Translations under genes and position numbers: made by a program | Shown: one piece after another, positions 18,450 through 51,802 of the stretch | Numbering within the stretch: the stretch's first letter is position 1 | Layout: each line of letters opens with the position of its first letter | The notes under the pieces: model-generated | Told to the model about the DNA's origin: nothing | Seen by the model: the letters and a program-made list of their open reading frames with translations, nothing else | The model's database searches: none | Assembly (NCBI GenBank): GCA_033442325.1 | Contig: JAWQFM010000001.1 | Coordinates: forward strand, 1,046,779-1,110,778 | Length of the DNA stretch: 64,000 nt | From: Salpingoeca rosetta | Taxonomy: Eukaryota > Protista > Choanoflagellata | Direction: 5' to 3'

Positions 18450-19436
18450 NNNNNNNNNNNNNNNNNNNNNNNNNNNNNNNNNNNNNNNNNNNNNNNNNNN
18501 NNNNNNNNNNNNNNNNNNNNNNNNNNNNNNNNNNNNNNNNNNNNNNNNNNNNNNNNNNNNNNNNNNNNNNNNNNNNNNNNNNNNNNNNNNNNNNNNNNNN
18601 NNNNNNNNNNNNNNNNNNNNNNNNNNNNNNNNNNNNNNNNNNNNNNNNNNNNNNNNNNNNNNNNNNNNNNNNNNNNNNNNNNNNNNNNNNNNNNNNNNNN
18701 NNNNNNNNNNNNNNNNNNNNNNNNNNNNNNNNNNNNNNNNNNNNNNNNNNNNNNNNNNNNNNNNNNNNNNNNNNNNNNNNNNNNNNNNNNNNNNNNNNNN
18801 NNNNNNNNNNNNNNNNNNNNNNNNNNNNNNNNNNNNNNNNNNNNNNNNNNNNNNNNNNNNNNNNNNNNNNNNNNNNNNNNNNNNNNNNNNNNNNNNNNNN
18901 NNNNNNNNNNNNNNNNNNNNNNNNNNNNNNNNNNNNNNNNNNNNNNNNNNNNNNNNNNNNNNNNNNNNNNNNNNNNNNNNNNNNNNNNNNNNNNNNNNNN
19001 NNNNNNNNNNNNNNNNNNNNNNNNNNNNNNNNNNNNNNNNNNNNNNNNNNNNNNNNNNNNNNNNNNNNNNNNNNNNNNNNNNNNNNNNNNNNNNNNNNNN
19101 NNNNNNNNNNNNNNNNNNNNNNNNNNNNNNNNNNNNNNNNNNNNNNNNNNNNNNNNNNNNNNNNNNNNNNNNNNNNNNNNNNNNNNNNNNNNNNNNNNNN
19201 NNNNNNNNNNNNNNNNNNNNNNNNNNNNNNNNNNNNNNNNNNNNNNNNNNNNNNNNNNNNNNNNNNNNNNNNNNNNNNNNNNNNNNNNNNNNNNNNNNNN
19301 NNNNNNNNNNNNNNNNNNNNNNNNNNNNNNNNNNNNNNNNNNNNNNNNNNNNNNNNNNNNNNNNNNNNNNNNNNNNNNNNNNNNNNNNNNNNNNNNNNNN
19401 NNNNNNNNNNNNNNNNNNNNNNNNNNNNNNNNNNNN
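18450..19436. other. Assembly gap (N run)
   Basis: Ns flanked by (TG)n repeats. Confidence 1.
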
Positions 19437-35977: not shown

Positions 35978-37172
35978 ACACATCAGCAGCAGCAGCATGG
36001 TGTTGCGCACCTCCAGGAAGCGAGCAGGGGTGGCGATGATGATGGGTGGGTTCTCTCGCTTGAGCTTTCGCAGCTGATATGGGCCAACGTAGGCAGCAAG
36101 GCGTTGTTTCGGGTGGCAGGGGTGAGCTGTGAGCAGATAGATAACAAGCAAGACATGGGCATGCGTGGGTGCAGAAGAGACACAGAGACATAAAACAGGT
36201 ACAGGCACGCAGTCACAGAGGGAGACATGACGACAGACACAGAGATAGATACACGCAGACAGACAGACATACAGACAGACGGACAGACGGACATACACAC
36301 ACACATACAGGCAGACAGGCAGACAGACAGGCAGACAGAAGCCAGACCTGCTTCTTTGGTGTTGAGTTTTCGATACCCTTGACCACGCAATGGACGTGCT
36401 GGGATGCCTTGTCGCCAACGACGGCGGAGAGCAGAGCTACAAACACGCTGTGCACCTGGACGGCAAGCTCCCGCGTTGGGACGAGGCACAATGTGGAGTA
36501 CCTGGGGAAGGTGAGGTCGTTGTCGATGTACCGCTGCACTATGGGCAGGGCGTACGCCAGCGTCTTGCCGGTGCCCGTGTGGGCTGCGAGTAGCGTGTTG
36601 TTACCAAACGAGATGGGCTTCCAGCCTTTTGCCTGCACGTCCGTAGGGGTGATGATGTTCCATTCAGCCAAGGGCGCTGCTAGTAACGCGTTGAGGCCCA
36701 GTTTCGCAAAGCCAACTGACGAGCTGCGTGACACTGCCGGTGTTGGTCGCGCCGCACCACCATCACCATCGCCATCACCATCACCATCACCCTTGGGTGT
36801 GTGCTTGGAGGGCACAGTCGCACCGAGGGCTGCACGGCTTACGTGAGCTGCTTTGTGGCTGTGGCTGTGGTTCTCGGTTGGAGCAGACACACGCTTGGTT
36901 GTGGTGGCTGGCGAGGTTTCTGGCGCGGAGGTATTGGTTGTGGTGTACGAGCGAGAGGCGAAGGTGCTGGTGCGCTCCGGCAGCCGCGCAGTGACAGCTG
37001 CGCATGTCATGCTCCATTGTCTTGCTCCATTTTGGCTGTTGGAGATGATTGCGGTCTTGGTTGTGCGTGCCCACGTGTGCTGGCTAAGAGCAGCAACACG
37101 ACAAAGCGCCCGGCACCCCCGCAGCACGTAACCCTGCCGAGCATGTCGGCAGAGGGGAGTCAGCGCGTGCAT
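33605..37172 (-). CDS. DEAD-box RNA helicase, possibly mitochondrial; multi-exon
   Basis: Q motif (FAKLGL..PTDVQ), I AHTGTGKT, Ia VPTRELAVQV, Ib IIATPARF, II VLDEAD, III SAS, V AIRGLDIP, VI YLHIAGRVGR. Arg-rich, acid-free N-terminus. The start codon is uncertain. Confidence 0.88.
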
Positions 37173-38570
37173 GTGTACGTGTATGTGACAGGTGTGCACA
37201 AGCAGCTGACTATGTCGAATGTGACTTTGAGAGATTGTGTCACGCACTGGCAAAGTCACGCAAGACGCACGTGTATATGTGTGTGTGTGCGTCCTTGTGT
37301 GCTGTGCGTTTGCTTGATTGCGTTTCAGTCGTCCTGCGTTTGTGGGTCTTCGAGTGATGAAGCTGTTGCTGTCGCTGCTTGACTTCTGCGATTGCTAGCC
37401 TGTTCTTGCTTGTTGCTGATGCTGTTGCCTGGGTCAAGTCTCGGTTGCAGCTAGTTCACTACCATGGACAAAGGGAAGGGCGTTTCAAACAAGTCACGCC
37501 ACTTCATGTCATGTCACAGCGTCTTGGCCTGTGTGTGGATGTGGTCGGGGGTGTGTTTGTTGTTGTTGTTTGTGGATGTGCTTTGCGTGTGTCCGTTGTG
37601 TGTGTGCGTGTGTGTGTTCGTGTGAGCGTATGTGTGTGTGTGTGTGTGTGACATGTGCTGGCTGTCTGTTGACATTGCTGACGTTTGGTGTACGATTTTG
37701 CACGATTTTCGACAGTCGTTATCGACGCAGTCAGCGCGGAGCAGGGACAACAGCGGTGAGTGACCTTGCCTGCGCTCTGGTTAGGGTTGCGTGCTGTCTT
37801 CGTTCGATCGATGTGCACCGGTTGCGTGCTGTGCCTCACTTCCAGCGATGTGCACATCCAGCAACCACATGTACGCGAGCAAAGGTCGCAATGTTTGTTT
37901 TGGTTGCAGATGCTTGCTTGCTTGCTTGCTTGCTTGTTTGTGCTGTGCTTTGCCTTTGACCAACCAGCCGCTTGCTCCTGTTCACGAACACGCACGAATA
38001 CGATGAATACGATGAATACGAAACCATTGAGCGCTACCTCACACGTCACTGAAACACGATCTTGCTGGTGTCGTTGGCTGACCTCAGCTCCATTCGATTT
38101 CAGGGTGTGCGACTGCTCCTCGGGGTGATGCTACCATTGATTCGCGACAACACCCGCACACACAACGTATCGGTAGGCCCTCTCGGTCCTTGTGTTCGTC
38201 ATCCACTCCCCTCGTGCTTGCTTCTTGCTTGTGCAACAAAGGGGTTGTTATAGAGTTGTCGGACTATTTCCACACGTTGTACCACACGCGGTCTTGGTTG
38301 TCGCTTTGTGTTTGGACAAATTTATGTTGTGAGATGTGACATGAGATTTGCTCTCGGTCGGTTGTTTGGATTTCCCTCCTTCCGCTTTGATGTCAGATCG
38401 ATTGATCTTTGCAGCACGCTCGCTGCTGCCTCTGAACCTGCAACAACACCAGTTACACTCGACCTGACAGTCCTCTGTTGCTCGTCGTTGCTGTTGCTCC
38501 TCTGCTGCTTCCTCCTCTTTGTTTGCTGCCAACCAACCAACCAACCAACCAATCAAACGGACGCGGCAGG

Positions 38571-39099
38571 ATGCCGCGCTGTGCCGTCGTTGTGTTTTGT
38601 GTGGGCACATCTGTGTGCTTGCGCCGAACTGAAGCTGCGTGGTGGTTGCACAACGCTGGAGAAGCATACAGGAGCTCCCTTGTTCTCGTCACCGATGTGC
38701 GATCCAACCTCAACGTCGCAGTTCTGCGTCCCCGTGGAGGTTCGTGTTAATAATGGTCAAGATCATGTTGTGAATGTGACAGCGCTTTTCTCGGCATGCC
38801 GCCACACCCACCATGTCGAACGCTGTTTTCGTGCCTGCATATCCTTCGCTTTGCTGCTTGCTTGTTTGCTCGTGGCGACGCCACGCTGTTGACCTCGCTT
38901 GGCTCCTTGCATTGTCTGCTTGTTCTTCCTTTTCCTCTTCGCTGAAACACCTACGCACACACACGCAACAACACCAACGCACACATACACTCACACACAC
39001 TTGCACACACTTGCACCCACACCCACATGCACTCATACACACATGCACGCGCACACCTACGCACACATACACACACACATACACACACACCAACCTACG

Positions 39100-39161
<62 letters not shown>

Positions 39162-40687
39162 CACCTTGACACACATGTGCAGGGCGAACGGATCGGGTGG
39201 ACGACCGCGTGGTGTGCGTGCCCTTTGCTCCTCGGCAAACGTGGGAAAGCATGTACAATGAGACGGCGACGGTGGAGCAAGTTGTCACGCGCGTGTGCGA
39301 TGACCTGGCTGCCGCCACCGTGCTGCTTGTGGGCGAGTTTGGATGCCCCAGCAGCGGCCTTGTCGTGCGGTGTGCAGAGGAGATCCGGCACCGCGACCCC
39401 GCGTGCTCGCTGTGTGTGCTCGAGCCATACTGCCCGCTGCTCCCTGCCGGGTCGCTGGGCCCGCTCCACGCCGCCCTGTGTGCGCGAGTGCTGGGCGAGG
39501 ACGAAAACGACAGCGATGACGATGGCGACGATGGCGCCTTTGCTGACGGCACACGGCATCGCGCGGACATGCGTGGGCGCTGTGGCCGACAAGTGCTGGA
39601 CCACCACCTACGGCTGCCATGCACACCGTCCACGCTCGATCCCCACGGCCCCGAGCGCCGCATCATGCACGCGCTCACGGTGCTTGGGTGCCCGCACGCG
39701 GGGCGCATGGCGGTGGCGCTGGCACAGCTCGCCTGCTTTGCCAACGGCATGCCGGGCCTTGCCGCAGTGCACGCGCTCGCACCCAAAGCCGCCAGTGCCC
39801 GAAGCAACACGAGCACAAACAGCAGCACCAGCACCAGCACCACCAGCACTCGTCGGAGGCACACAGGGAGGAGACACGGAGACCGCAGTAGCCGGGACAG
39901 CGGCGTGGAGGACGTGGCGCTGGAGCTGGTACAGCTGCACCACCAGCGCCATTACCGGCATCTCTACTGCACTGGTGCTGATGGTGGACATGGTCTTGAA
40001 GGTAGCGCAACGGGAACAGCAATAGGAGGAGGAGATGGAGGCTACCGATGCGGACTGACGCAGCGTACTGGTGACGGTGGCGACGGCACCGCATCCTTGT
40101 CATCAATGGTGCTCGTGCAACAACAGCAGCAACGCCAACAACGCCAGCAACGCCAGCAGCAGCAGCAGCAGCATGCGCACGGCGGTGTGAGCAGTGCCGT
40201 TGGGAAGAGTCAACCACCAGAGGCCTTGGTAGGGCGAGGAGGTGGGGCGGATTCCAGAAGAGGTGGAAGTCAAGGCGATGCCTGTGCTGAGCACAAGAAC
40301 AAGAGCAACAAGAGCAGCAACAAGAACAAGAACAGGAGCAACACCCTCGACAGCGGCCATGGCAGCAGCGCAACACCCAGGAGCAGGCCCACCACGGCGT
40401 CGGCTACAGTTGCACCAGCAGCAGGCAAGCGCACCGCAGCTCACAGCGTCGGCACGGGAGGTGCCATCATGCCACCGTCAGCATCATCATGCGCTGCCAC
40501 ATTGCAGTGTCGCGTGGTGCTCTCAGCGCCCGCCAGCACAACGGCTGTCGTTGGCCCGCTGTTTCCCACCAACCCAGCACAACAGCAGCCTTCACGGCGA
40601 ACACAGCTGCCACCGTTTTTGGCGAGCATCTTCCAGCAACCCACTGCCGCAACCGTTACACCTGCTGCGCCCAGGACAGAAACCTGA
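38571..40687 (+). CDS. Highly divergent tubulin/Misato-superfamily-like protein with a low-complexity tail; 2 exons, about 557 aa
   Basis: Exons 38571-38739 and 39183-40687 join in frame (phase 1). Segments collinear with tubulin: MPRCAVVVFCVG, YRSSLVLVTD, QTWESMYNE, VLLVGEFGCPSSGLVVRCAEEIRHRDP, GPLHAALCARVL, LHHQRHYRHLY. Confidence 0.5.
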
Positions 40688-49567: not shown

Positions 49568-51802
49568 TCATAATGAGCGTTAGATATGTTAAACCAGTTG
49601 AAGCAAGGGACATAATGGAGTTGTAAAGTAAATTANNNNNNNNNNNNNNNNNNNNNNNNNNNNNNNNNNNNNNNNNNNNNNNNNNNNNNNNNNNNNNNNN
49701 NNNNNNNNNNNNNNNNNNNNNNNNNNNNNNNNNNNNNNNNCACACACACACACACACACACGCAGGGAAGCAGTACCTTGTGCGTGCGTCATATCTGGAA
49801 ATCTACATGGAAGACATTCGCGATCTTTTGTCAAAGGACCAGGAGCGCAAACTGCCGATTCGCGAGTCGCCGGACACAGGCGTGTATGTGGAAGACCTCA
49901 CCTCTATTGTTGTCAAGAGCGTCAAGGAAATCGACAAGGTGCTGCGCTGCCCTGCATGTTCCGAGTGTATGCACTGTCTGGCATGTCCCCACCTCGGCAC
50001 ACAACCTTTGGTCAATTTATCAAAACCACACACACACACACACACACTCAGACACACACACTCAGACACACACACAGACACACACACAGACACACACACA
50101 ACCACACAGACACACACACAACCACACAGACACACACACAACCACGCACACACATACATACACATACACACACACACACATACACAACCGCAACCACTCC
50201 GTCGGTACGCTCACCTCATTGCATCACGACTACATGCGTGCCGCAACCAGGTGATGCGTGTCGGGTGGAAGAACCGCAAAGTCGGCGTGACGAAGATGAA
50301 CGCGCACTCGTCGCGGTCGCACGCCATCTTCATGGTCAATGTGGAGTGCAGTGAGGCCGGGGAGGACGGGGAGGCGCACATCCGCAGCGGCAAACTCAAT
50401 CTCGTCGATCTTGCCGGTACGCTGCTGCTTTTTGTTACGTGTTGCGTGTTGCGCGTTGTGTGTTGCGTGTTGCGTGTGGTGTGGGTTTGGGGTTGTGCAT
50501 TGTGAATTTGGTTGAGGTGTTGTGTTCATGTGTGATTACACGTACATGTGTGTGTATGTTTGTGGCGGTGGCGGTGCTCTCTTCGTTGCTTGCCTCACAG
50601 TTGTTGTGTGTCGGTGTCGCCTGGTGTTGACAGGGAGTGAGCGACAAGGCAAGACGATGGCTGAGGGCGAGCGTGCAAAAGAAGGCAGCCACATCAACAA
50701 GTCCCTCTCCGCTCTGGGACAGGTCTGTTCAAACAATTCGCCGTTGAGGGAAGGGAATGTGCAGCGTTACTCAGCGTCCGTACATGCGTGCAGTGTGCGT
50801 GGTCACACCCACAACTCTTCATTGCTGTACAACTGAATCGACGCATGGCGTGGTGTTGTGTGTGTGCGTGTTGTGGGCTGTCAGGTGATCAAAGCGTTGG
50901 TTGACTCAAAGGGCTCCGGGTTTGTTCCGTACCGCAACTCCAGCCTCACCCGTCTCTTACAGGTGAGCATCGCTGAAGACTTACGAAGACGTCGAGGAGT
51001 GACACCGAGGGGGCGTGCATGCGATTTTGTTAGTTCAACGTCGATTTCACACACACACACACATGCACGTGCAAACGCGTCTGCGACAGGATTCGTTGGG
51101 CGGGAATGCGAAGACGATGATGATTGCGGCGATTGGGCCCGCGGACTACAACTACAACGAAACAATTAGCACTCTCGGATATGCCCATCGAGCAAAGAGC
51201 ATCAAGAACAAGCCCAAGATCAACGAAGATCCAAAGGTAAACACACACGATGGCACCTGTTGCTGCTGTTGCCCCACCATCTGGCAGAGAGTCCTCCTGG
51301 TTTGCCTGCTTGCTTCACCGTGCGTTGTTGTTTTTGTTTCTTTTTTTTTTTTTTTTTTCACTCTCGCTGGCAACAACAAACTCACCACCGACGTGATTGC
51401 CTCTGCCTGCGTGTGCTCTCGCGGTTTGTGTGTGTCTAGGATGCGCTCCTGCGGAAATACCAGGAGGAAATTGCAGCGCTGAAACATCAGCTTGAATCAA
51501 AGGTACATGTGTGTGCGTGTGTGTGTTTCTTGTGTGTGTGAGCTTGTGCTGGGTGGCATCTCTCCATCTGTCTCTTGCTGTGATGGTGAGACACGTCTCA
51601 CTCCCGCACCCCTCTCCAACCCCAATCGCCTCATGATGGTGTTGCATTGCACTCTGCCAGGGGAGCGGAGGAAAGAAGCGCAAGGGCGGGAAGAAGAAGA
51701 AGAAGAAGGTTAAGACCATCCGATACGACGCAGACGGTGAGCTGAGATGTTGTGCACACGTGTGTGCACACCTACACACACCCACACACACACACCTACA
51801 CG

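Follow-up and report, generated by a model that had tools for sequence, protein, structure and literature searches.

The prokaryotic and viral homologues of tubulin, namely CetZ, FtsZ, TubZ, BtubA and PhuZ, form polymers; they have a T4 loop of the GGGTG(S/T)G type as well as the T1 loop, and their C-terminal domain carries the catalytic T7 loop. To our knowledge, very few proteins of the superfamily do without both guanosine triphosphate (GTP) and polymerisation, and these are poorly understood; the textbook case is Misato/DML1, a eukaryotic member whose GTP-binding loops are degenerate and which works with tubulin-folding and microtubule machinery without itself being a subunit of microtubules. 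Here we describe PTSG_00553, a gene of the choanoflagellate Salpingoeca rosetta, which lies on the forward strand of a 64,000-nucleotide stretch (assembly GCA_033442325.1, contig JAWQFM010000001.1, positions 1,046,779 to 1,110,778) referred to below as the window, whose numbering is used for the S. rosetta locus. A preliminary description made from the letters of the window had read the gene as a pseudo-tubulin. With a probability of roughly 0.55, we take its product to be a lineage-restricted, probably GTP-dead and non-polymerising pseudo-tubulin scaffold, composed of a predicted N-terminal domain running from strand S1 to helix H7 and a disordered tail.

Gene structure and distribution of PTSG_00553

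The exon-2 open reading frame (ORF) retrieved the public protein PTSG_00553 (P0001, 557 amino acids, labelled hypothetical) at 100% identity. This match set aside a trypanosomatid origin with a spliced-leader trans-splice acceptor, which the GC content and the CA repeats had suggested. Exon 1 (38571..38739, + strand, as are all features of the gene given below) begins at ATG 38571 and supplies residues 1–56 and the first base of codon 57; it holds the predicted S1, T1-equivalent loop, H1 and S2, and its translation is the N terminus of P0001. It is followed by a phase-1 intron of 443 nt (38740..39182) that has GT..AG ends and many CA repeats. Exon 2 (39183..40687) completes codon 57 with two bases, encodes residues 58–557 and closes with the stop codon at 40685-40687. 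Donor (GAG/GTTCGT, 38739/38740) and acceptor (TGTGCAG/G, 39182/39183) can both be read in the window. The two exons, of which the first contributes 56 codons and one base, join in frame, and the joined product equals P0001 residue for residue, with the Gly57 codon split across the junction; a retained intron would run into a stop three codons past the donor. The two-exon model with its upstream start, as first proposed, is therefore that of the public protein. For all comparisons the spliced S. rosetta protein was used through its public identifier, and the exons of relatives (L016:99-266, L016:487-..., L014:157-...) were used singly and never joined. No paper on PTSG_00553 was found in the literature, nor was a paralogue found elsewhere in the S. 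rosetta genome.

When residues 1–310 were searched exhaustively with HMMER among 1.84 billion representatives, no more than two further clusters came up, both from uncultured organisms. The first comes from TARA Oceans and other marine metagenome contigs in ENA (P0002 and P0004; loci L016, L017 and L022), and the second from two Logan assemblies (P0003; L014 and L015). Neither word-index searches, run once with the alignment and once with P0003, nor a scan of JGI metagenomes yielded further relatives, so that the family is confined so far to S. rosetta and these two uncultured relatives. The domain is conserved in the three lineages at 38–45% identity.

The clearest support for the 38739/39183 splice was obtained from the TARA contig L016. 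Positions 99-266 of that contig encode a counterpart of exon 1 that shares 45% identity with the S. rosetta sequence and ends in a single G before GTTTGT; the phase-1 GT..AG intron that follows interrupts the same codon as in S. rosetta, and its acceptor keeps both the phase and the number of residues up to a conserved P-F motif. The orthologous introns (38740-39182 in S. rosetta, L016:267-484) share position and phase and are unrelated in sequence. A conserved spliceosomal intron implies long residence of the gene in its lineage, and PTSG_00553 is, as judged from sequence, a real protein-coding gene of S. rosetta with a spliced intron. It is hardly credible that the annotation is an artefact, whether an ORF that arose by chance in GC-rich DNA or a gene made up of exon 2 only, translated from ATG 39251, to which a spurious upstream exon was added. 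The called proteins of the relatives (P0002, P0003) do begin inside exon 2; in both L016 and L014, however, exon-2 conservation continues upstream of ATG 39251 as far as the acceptor, so these short starts are best explained as intron-blind gene calls on metagenome contigs and do not count against exon 1. The conserved exon 1 and intron phase in L016, and the retention of the domain in three lineages, also speak against an artefact.

Several further observations were made on these loci. Each orthologous intron carries a dinucleotide microsatellite of its own, (CA)25 at 39104-39153 in S. rosetta and (GA)n(GT)n in L016, and microsatellite-rich introns are also seen in tubulin and Misato loci of the S. 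rosetta genome. The TARA variants L022 and L017 differ from L016 mostly by changes of repeat length (22 gap openings versus seven substitutions over 2.5 kb), and the T/A-rich protein tail shows in-frame length changes among TARA variants (P0002 versus P0006). Between L016 and L022 there are only seven substitutions, too few for a ratio of nonsynonymous to synonymous change within the TARA population. No synteny of the relatives with the window was detected by local tblastx (window pieces ending at 39000 or starting at 39060), and the ORFs adjoining the gene on L016 matched nothing in S. rosetta and nothing informative in Pfam, apart from a single sub-threshold match to GemA.

Predicted fold and comparison with tubulin sequences

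Two AlphaFold2 models were examined, model 1 from a four-row alignment (A1) and model 2 of the second orthologue, a protein without the first two strands. Model 1 reached a predicted template-modelling score of 0.63 and a mean predicted local distance difference test (pLDDT) score of 58.7, with core blocks at 70–90. Its successive elements are beta(3–10), the T1-equivalent loop (11–18), alpha(19–33), beta(37–42), beta(66–69), alpha(77–97), beta(100–106), alpha(114–127), beta(132–139), alpha(149–160), beta(197–202), alpha(212–223) and alpha(229–243). This is the tubulin/FtsZ order S1-H1-S2-S3-H3-S4-H4-S5-H5-S6-H6-H7, with H2 missing. At the level of fold, the predicted model thus has the Rossmann-type N-domain with strands S1–S6 and helices H1–H7 in the tubulin/FtsZ arrangement that characterizes the superfamily, and the putative tubulin/FtsZ-type (GTPase-type) domain is assigned to residues 1–255 (38571..39778, interrupted by the intron).

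When model 1 was compared with the PDB by Foldseek, mainly tubulins were returned (probability ~1.0, E from 7e-4), and the top PDB representatives all belonged to the tubulin/FtsZ superfamily in the models of both orthologues. Among 15 chains scored against model 1, CetZ came first (12.4), followed by TubZ (11.5), FtsZ (11.4), BtubA (11.1), PhuZ (10.4 and 10.1) and a further FtsZ (9.9); Asgard and Odin tubulins and beta-tubulin scored 9.9, alpha-tubulin 9.8, CetZ2 9.5, further TubZ chains 9.1 and 9.0, and gamma-tubulin 8.5. In model 2 the register was displaced, as it should be in a protein without S1-S2. A shape search of the ESM Atlas with model 1 placed a Misato cluster (PF10644 and PF14881) first, with a template-modelling (TM) score of 0.51 over 207 aligned residues, and beta-tubulin also scored 0.51. 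The match of the N-terminal residues to a tubulin/FtsZ fold, which had been set beforehand as a test of the pseudo-tubulin idea, was therefore obtained in both the Foldseek and the shape searches, and from the models we infer homology of the domain with tubulin/FtsZ.

Sequence comparisons gave a different picture. Pfam, NCBIfam and PDB sequences were scanned with the whole protein, the domain, the single exons and the orthologues, and no tubulin, FtsZ or Misato match was found, even at E ≤ 10; the curated cut-off of PF00091 (Tubulin/FtsZ GTPase domain) was reached by neither P0001, its domain nor the orthologues, and a family profile run against PDB sequences returned nothing relevant. Local alignments with the S. 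rosetta beta and alpha tubulins scored 1.3 and 0.8 standard deviations above shuffled sequences, and global scores fell under the shuffle mean. With hhalign, the family alignment matched the S. rosetta alpha/beta tubulins at a probability of 0.7%; the sole stretch aligned, V-L-L-V-G-E-F...L-E-P-Y, was set opposite S4-T4-H4-S5/T5 of tubulin, the position to which it corresponds in structure. Since profile scans, shuffles and hhalign were all negative, the six segments that had originally been listed as collinear with tubulin are, as sequence similarity, at the level of chance. Five of them nonetheless fall on S1, S2, T3/H3, S4-T4-H4 and H5 of the predicted model; the sixth (residues 308–318, 39935-39967) lies in a region of pLDDT below 50, is not conserved in the orthologues and is not borne out.

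A number of points weigh against the pseudo-tubulin reading. The tubulin likeness is backed by no sequence statistic. The models were built on alignments of only three to four sequences, and their mean pLDDT values are 58.7 and 50.0. The ESM Atlas model of the whole protein (pLDDT 0.39) matched GT-B glycosyltransferases (TM 0.47–0.52) and not tubulin, and the Atlas language-model (feature-search) neighbours were AAA_16 ATPases at 0.86, a value under the trust level of the tool. Expression and splicing are predicted from the public model and sequence conservation, and the scaffold role, the lack of polymerisation and the loss of GTP use are all things that we infer. The tubulin N-domain, moreover, is built on a common Rossmann sheet, and cysteine synthase, UDP-GlcNAc 2-epimerase and short-chain dehydrogenases/reductases appear in the Foldseek list at similar E-values. 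The domain might accordingly be a generic Rossmann-like alpha/beta domain not descended from tubulin/FtsZ, such as a degenerate module of glycosyltransferase, dehydrogenase or P-loop type, its tubulin matches arising from bias or imprecision of AlphaFold2 with shallow alignments. We consider this possible but doubtful. The tubulin/FtsZ result recurs in the second orthologue, with the register shift expected without S1-S2; the Atlas matches come from the model of pLDDT 0.39, at scores that the tool rates as leads only; and no P-loop or glycosyltransferase motif is seen in the sequence.

Nucleotide site, tail and family membership

In GTP-binding members of the tubulin superfamily, no element is more conserved than the T4 loop. 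In PTSG_00553 the T4 position is occupied by residues 107–113 (GEFGCPS, 39332..39352), a degenerate loop that hhalign aligned with tubulin S4-T4-H4, where tubulins have GGGTGSG. The three lineages read GEFGCPS, GDLCAGAA and TELETHY at this position, with 2/14 identities, the lowest in the domain; identities are highest in predicted strands and helices (S2 5/6, H7 20/30, H4 15/28, H3 21/42). The T1 position reads VGTSVC and CSGSVC, and neither of the T1 types of the superfamily, GQCGNQ and GGGGxN, occurs there. The sequence thus bears out the reported absence of the GQCGNQ (T1) and GGGTGSG (T4) motifs from the protein. The free evolution of the T4 loop argues that the phosphate-binding site is gone, and loss of GTP binding and hydrolysis is accordingly suggested by the sequence. 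The original picture of a probably GTP-dead, tubulin-like protein agrees with the predicted fold in two orthologues and with the absence of the motifs.

Between H5 and S6 lies an acidic insertion of 36 residues (161–196, 39494..39601) that is specific to S. rosetta and absent from both orthologues; with pLDDT below 50, it is predicted to be disordered. The domain is followed by a low-complexity tail rich in S, A, G, T and Q (residues 256–557, 39779..40684), likewise predicted to be disordered: pLDDT is 25–43 over residues 254–310 in model 1 and below 50 past residue 254 in both models. The tail contains S/T (39803-39850), poly-Q/R (40118-40171) and N/K/S (40298-40342) runs, together with two patches conserved in the three-protein alignment A3, G-V-x-x-V-A-L-E-L near residue 302 (39902-39937) and a C-terminal P-P-F (40607-40633). 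No Pfam match to a C-terminal or intermediate domain with the acidic T7-loop residue (PF03953 or FtsZ_C) was obtained, and conservation past residue 254 amounts to the two short motifs. The intermediate domain, initially thought to be much shortened, is thus undetectable, and the disordered tail that had been expected from residue 320 (~240 amino acids) is present but begins at about residue 256 (~300 amino acids).

The composition of the protein also bears on a quite different idea, that the hydrophobic N terminus (M-P-R and ~14 hydrophobic residues) is the signal peptide of a cysteine-rich protein that is secreted or exposed at the cell surface and whose tail, rich in S and T, resembles that of mucins. 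Residues 3–17 have a Kyte-Doolittle mean of 2.0, the 255-residue domain contains 15 cysteines, of which six are invariant in A3, and the tail is of low complexity and rich in S, T and N. The N terminus is, however, conserved residue by residue with a relative, including three cysteines and a V-V-V core, which is unusual for signal peptides. In the AlphaFold2 model, moreover, residues 3–10 form the first strand of the alpha/beta domain (pLDDT 77 in the first 10-residue block) and are followed by a loop of small residues, as after beta1 of a Rossmann fold, and hydropathy in 19-residue windows stays below the transmembrane level throughout (maximum 1.5, at S4). This makes a signal peptide very improbable.

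The S. rosetta genome was surveyed for other members of the superfamily. A canonical Misato gene was found at G000:C14:639879-640405 (L001), where PF10644 scores 52.6 and 37.9 bits, exon by exon. In this Misato/DML1 gene an N-terminal exon with E-V-I-T-L-Q-F-G...H-F-W-N is followed by exons with Y-T-P-R-L-L-L-Y-D and W-S-D-Y-L, and the introns between them are rich in (TG)n. PTSG_00553 itself matched neither PF10644 nor PF14881, even at E ≤ 10; PF14881 matched nothing across the S. rosetta genome or in controls, so that this genome search was uninformative. PF00091 gave eight matches at seven loci of the genome, none of them in PTSG_00553. These loci include intact beta and alpha genes and one exon matching beta-tubulin in the PDB at 4e-35. 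One locus (L012, G000:C4:256152-256280) has a delta-type MSVVTVQLGQAGNQ N terminus and an intact GGTGSG, and by eye it looks delta-tubulin-like; another (L011, G000:C22:860238-860486) looks gamma-tubulin-like, again by eye from subfamily motifs. The survey asked for at the outset thus located Misato and at least seven PF00091 loci, with the delta-like and gamma-like ones assigned by eye.

The zeta/delta-like or Misato-like identity first envisaged is not supported as orthology by these results, given that no tubulin or Misato Pfam match is present and that a Misato gene and at least seven PF00091 loci lie elsewhere. Assignment as an ordinary delta, epsilon or zeta tubulin was rejected for want of a PF00091 match (in a survey that did not specifically seek zeta-tubulin), and assignment as the Misato orthologue was rejected because PF10644 is not matched and the canonical gene is at L001. 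A viral origin was rejected too, with no BFVD match at E ≤ 0.001 and PhuZ appearing first at rank 19. Structural scores do not single out a parent lineage, since the prokaryote-type CetZ, TubZ and FtsZ score equal to or slightly above eukaryotic tubulins, and Misato ties with beta-tubulin; the higher prokaryote-type scores probably reflect greater compactness.

Descent as a fast-evolving duplicate of Misato/DML1, and not of a polymerising tubulin or a prokaryote-type FtsZ, CetZ or TubZ, with a Misato-like role retained alongside tubulin-folding (CCT) or mitochondrial machinery, was also considered and is judged quite unlikely. It would account for a Misato cluster heading the ESM Atlas shape search, and Misato, too, has degenerate glycine loops. 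By eye only, the first strand starts at residue ~3 as in Misato, a W-W after H1 recalls the Misato F-W, and a strand of hydrophobic residues ending in T-D recalls L-L-Y-D. The genuine S. rosetta Misato is nevertheless readily scored by PF10644 whereas PTSG_00553 is matched by neither Misato profile; the beta-tubulin tie in the Atlas and a PDB set that holds no Misato structure weaken the shape match, and the C-terminal half of Misato is lacking.

Elsewhere in the window, an upstream ORF on the opposite strand (36213-37259, -) contains a Walker A motif of DEAD-box-helicase type, A-H-T-G-T-G-K-T-L, and probably forms one exon of a helicase gene oriented divergently from PTSG_00553. Runs of N, which may be assembly gaps, occur at 18450-19436 and 49636-49740, and an apparent dip in GC content at 18–20 kb is due to the N runs in the window.

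Proposed role and comparison with known systems

As a pseudo-tubulin scaffold, PTSG_00553 would work as follows. Its N-terminal ~255 residues would fold as the tubulin/FtsZ nucleotide-binding domain, from S1 to the core helix H7, from which the two GTP-holding, glycine-rich loops T1 and T4 would have been lost. Also missing would be the C-terminal/intermediate domain, the source of the T7 loop that in filaments completes the active site of the following subunit. With no T1/T4 glycine loops and no partner domain to supply T7, a GTP-dependent head-to-tail polymerisation cycle should be impossible; the protein would thus be expected neither to bind or hydrolyse GTP in the manner of tubulin nor to polymerise. 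The folded, tubulin-like head of such a pseudo-GTPase scaffold may instead offer a protein-binding surface, made up of helices H3, H4 and H7 and the invariant L-E-P-Y and L-A-C motifs, and the ~300-residue disordered tail, with its two short conserved linear motifs, would extend from it.

A bolder version of this idea, which we consider unlikely, is that the family represents an unrecognised branch of tubulin/FtsZ in a few choanoflagellate-like lineages, reduced to the N-domain, stripped of its nucleotide site, provided with a long disordered tail and working as a tubulin mimic. Such a mimic might, for example, sit at one longitudinal or lateral interface for tubulin binding and thereby act on microtubules, gamma-tubulin complexes or tubulin chaperones of the collar or flagellar apparatus, capping or regulating them.

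If the fold prediction is right, the pseudo-tubulin scaffold would be a second, independent case of a tubulin-superfamily protein that uses no GTP and forms no polymer, in this instance reduced to the N-domain, and it would be found in a tractable system, as choanoflagellates are the closest unicellular relatives of animals and genetic tools for them exist; for S. rosetta these include endogenous tagging and CRISPR knockout (PMC7314544). It would open the questions of what the tubulin fold does without a nucleotide and of how far the superfamily diverges beyond detection by sequence. Should the prediction fail, PTSG_00553 would simply join the lineage-specific orphans that have a Rossmann-like domain.

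Set against known systems, PTSG_00553 differs from the eukaryotic tubulins (alpha to zeta; PF00091 and PF03953) in matching neither profile, in showing no tubulin signature, in its much shorter H1-S2 loop and in having no detectable intermediate or C-terminal domain. Unlike CetZ, FtsZ, TubZ, BtubA and PhuZ, in which the T1, T4 and C-terminal/T7 features are all present, it has these features absent or undetectable; it also differs from them in its conserved spliceosomal intron and in the lack of a significant viral match. Misato/DML1 (MSTO1; PF10644 Misat_Tub_SegII and PF14881 Tubulin_3) differs from it in its Pfam matches, whereas PTSG_00553 consists only of an N-terminal domain of ~255 amino acids and a disordered tail and occurs in three lineages. 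Misato/DML1 is nonetheless its best shape match in the ESM Atlas, the first strand lies right at the N terminus in both proteins, and by analogy Misato/DML1 would be the nearest functional counterpart of PTSG_00553.
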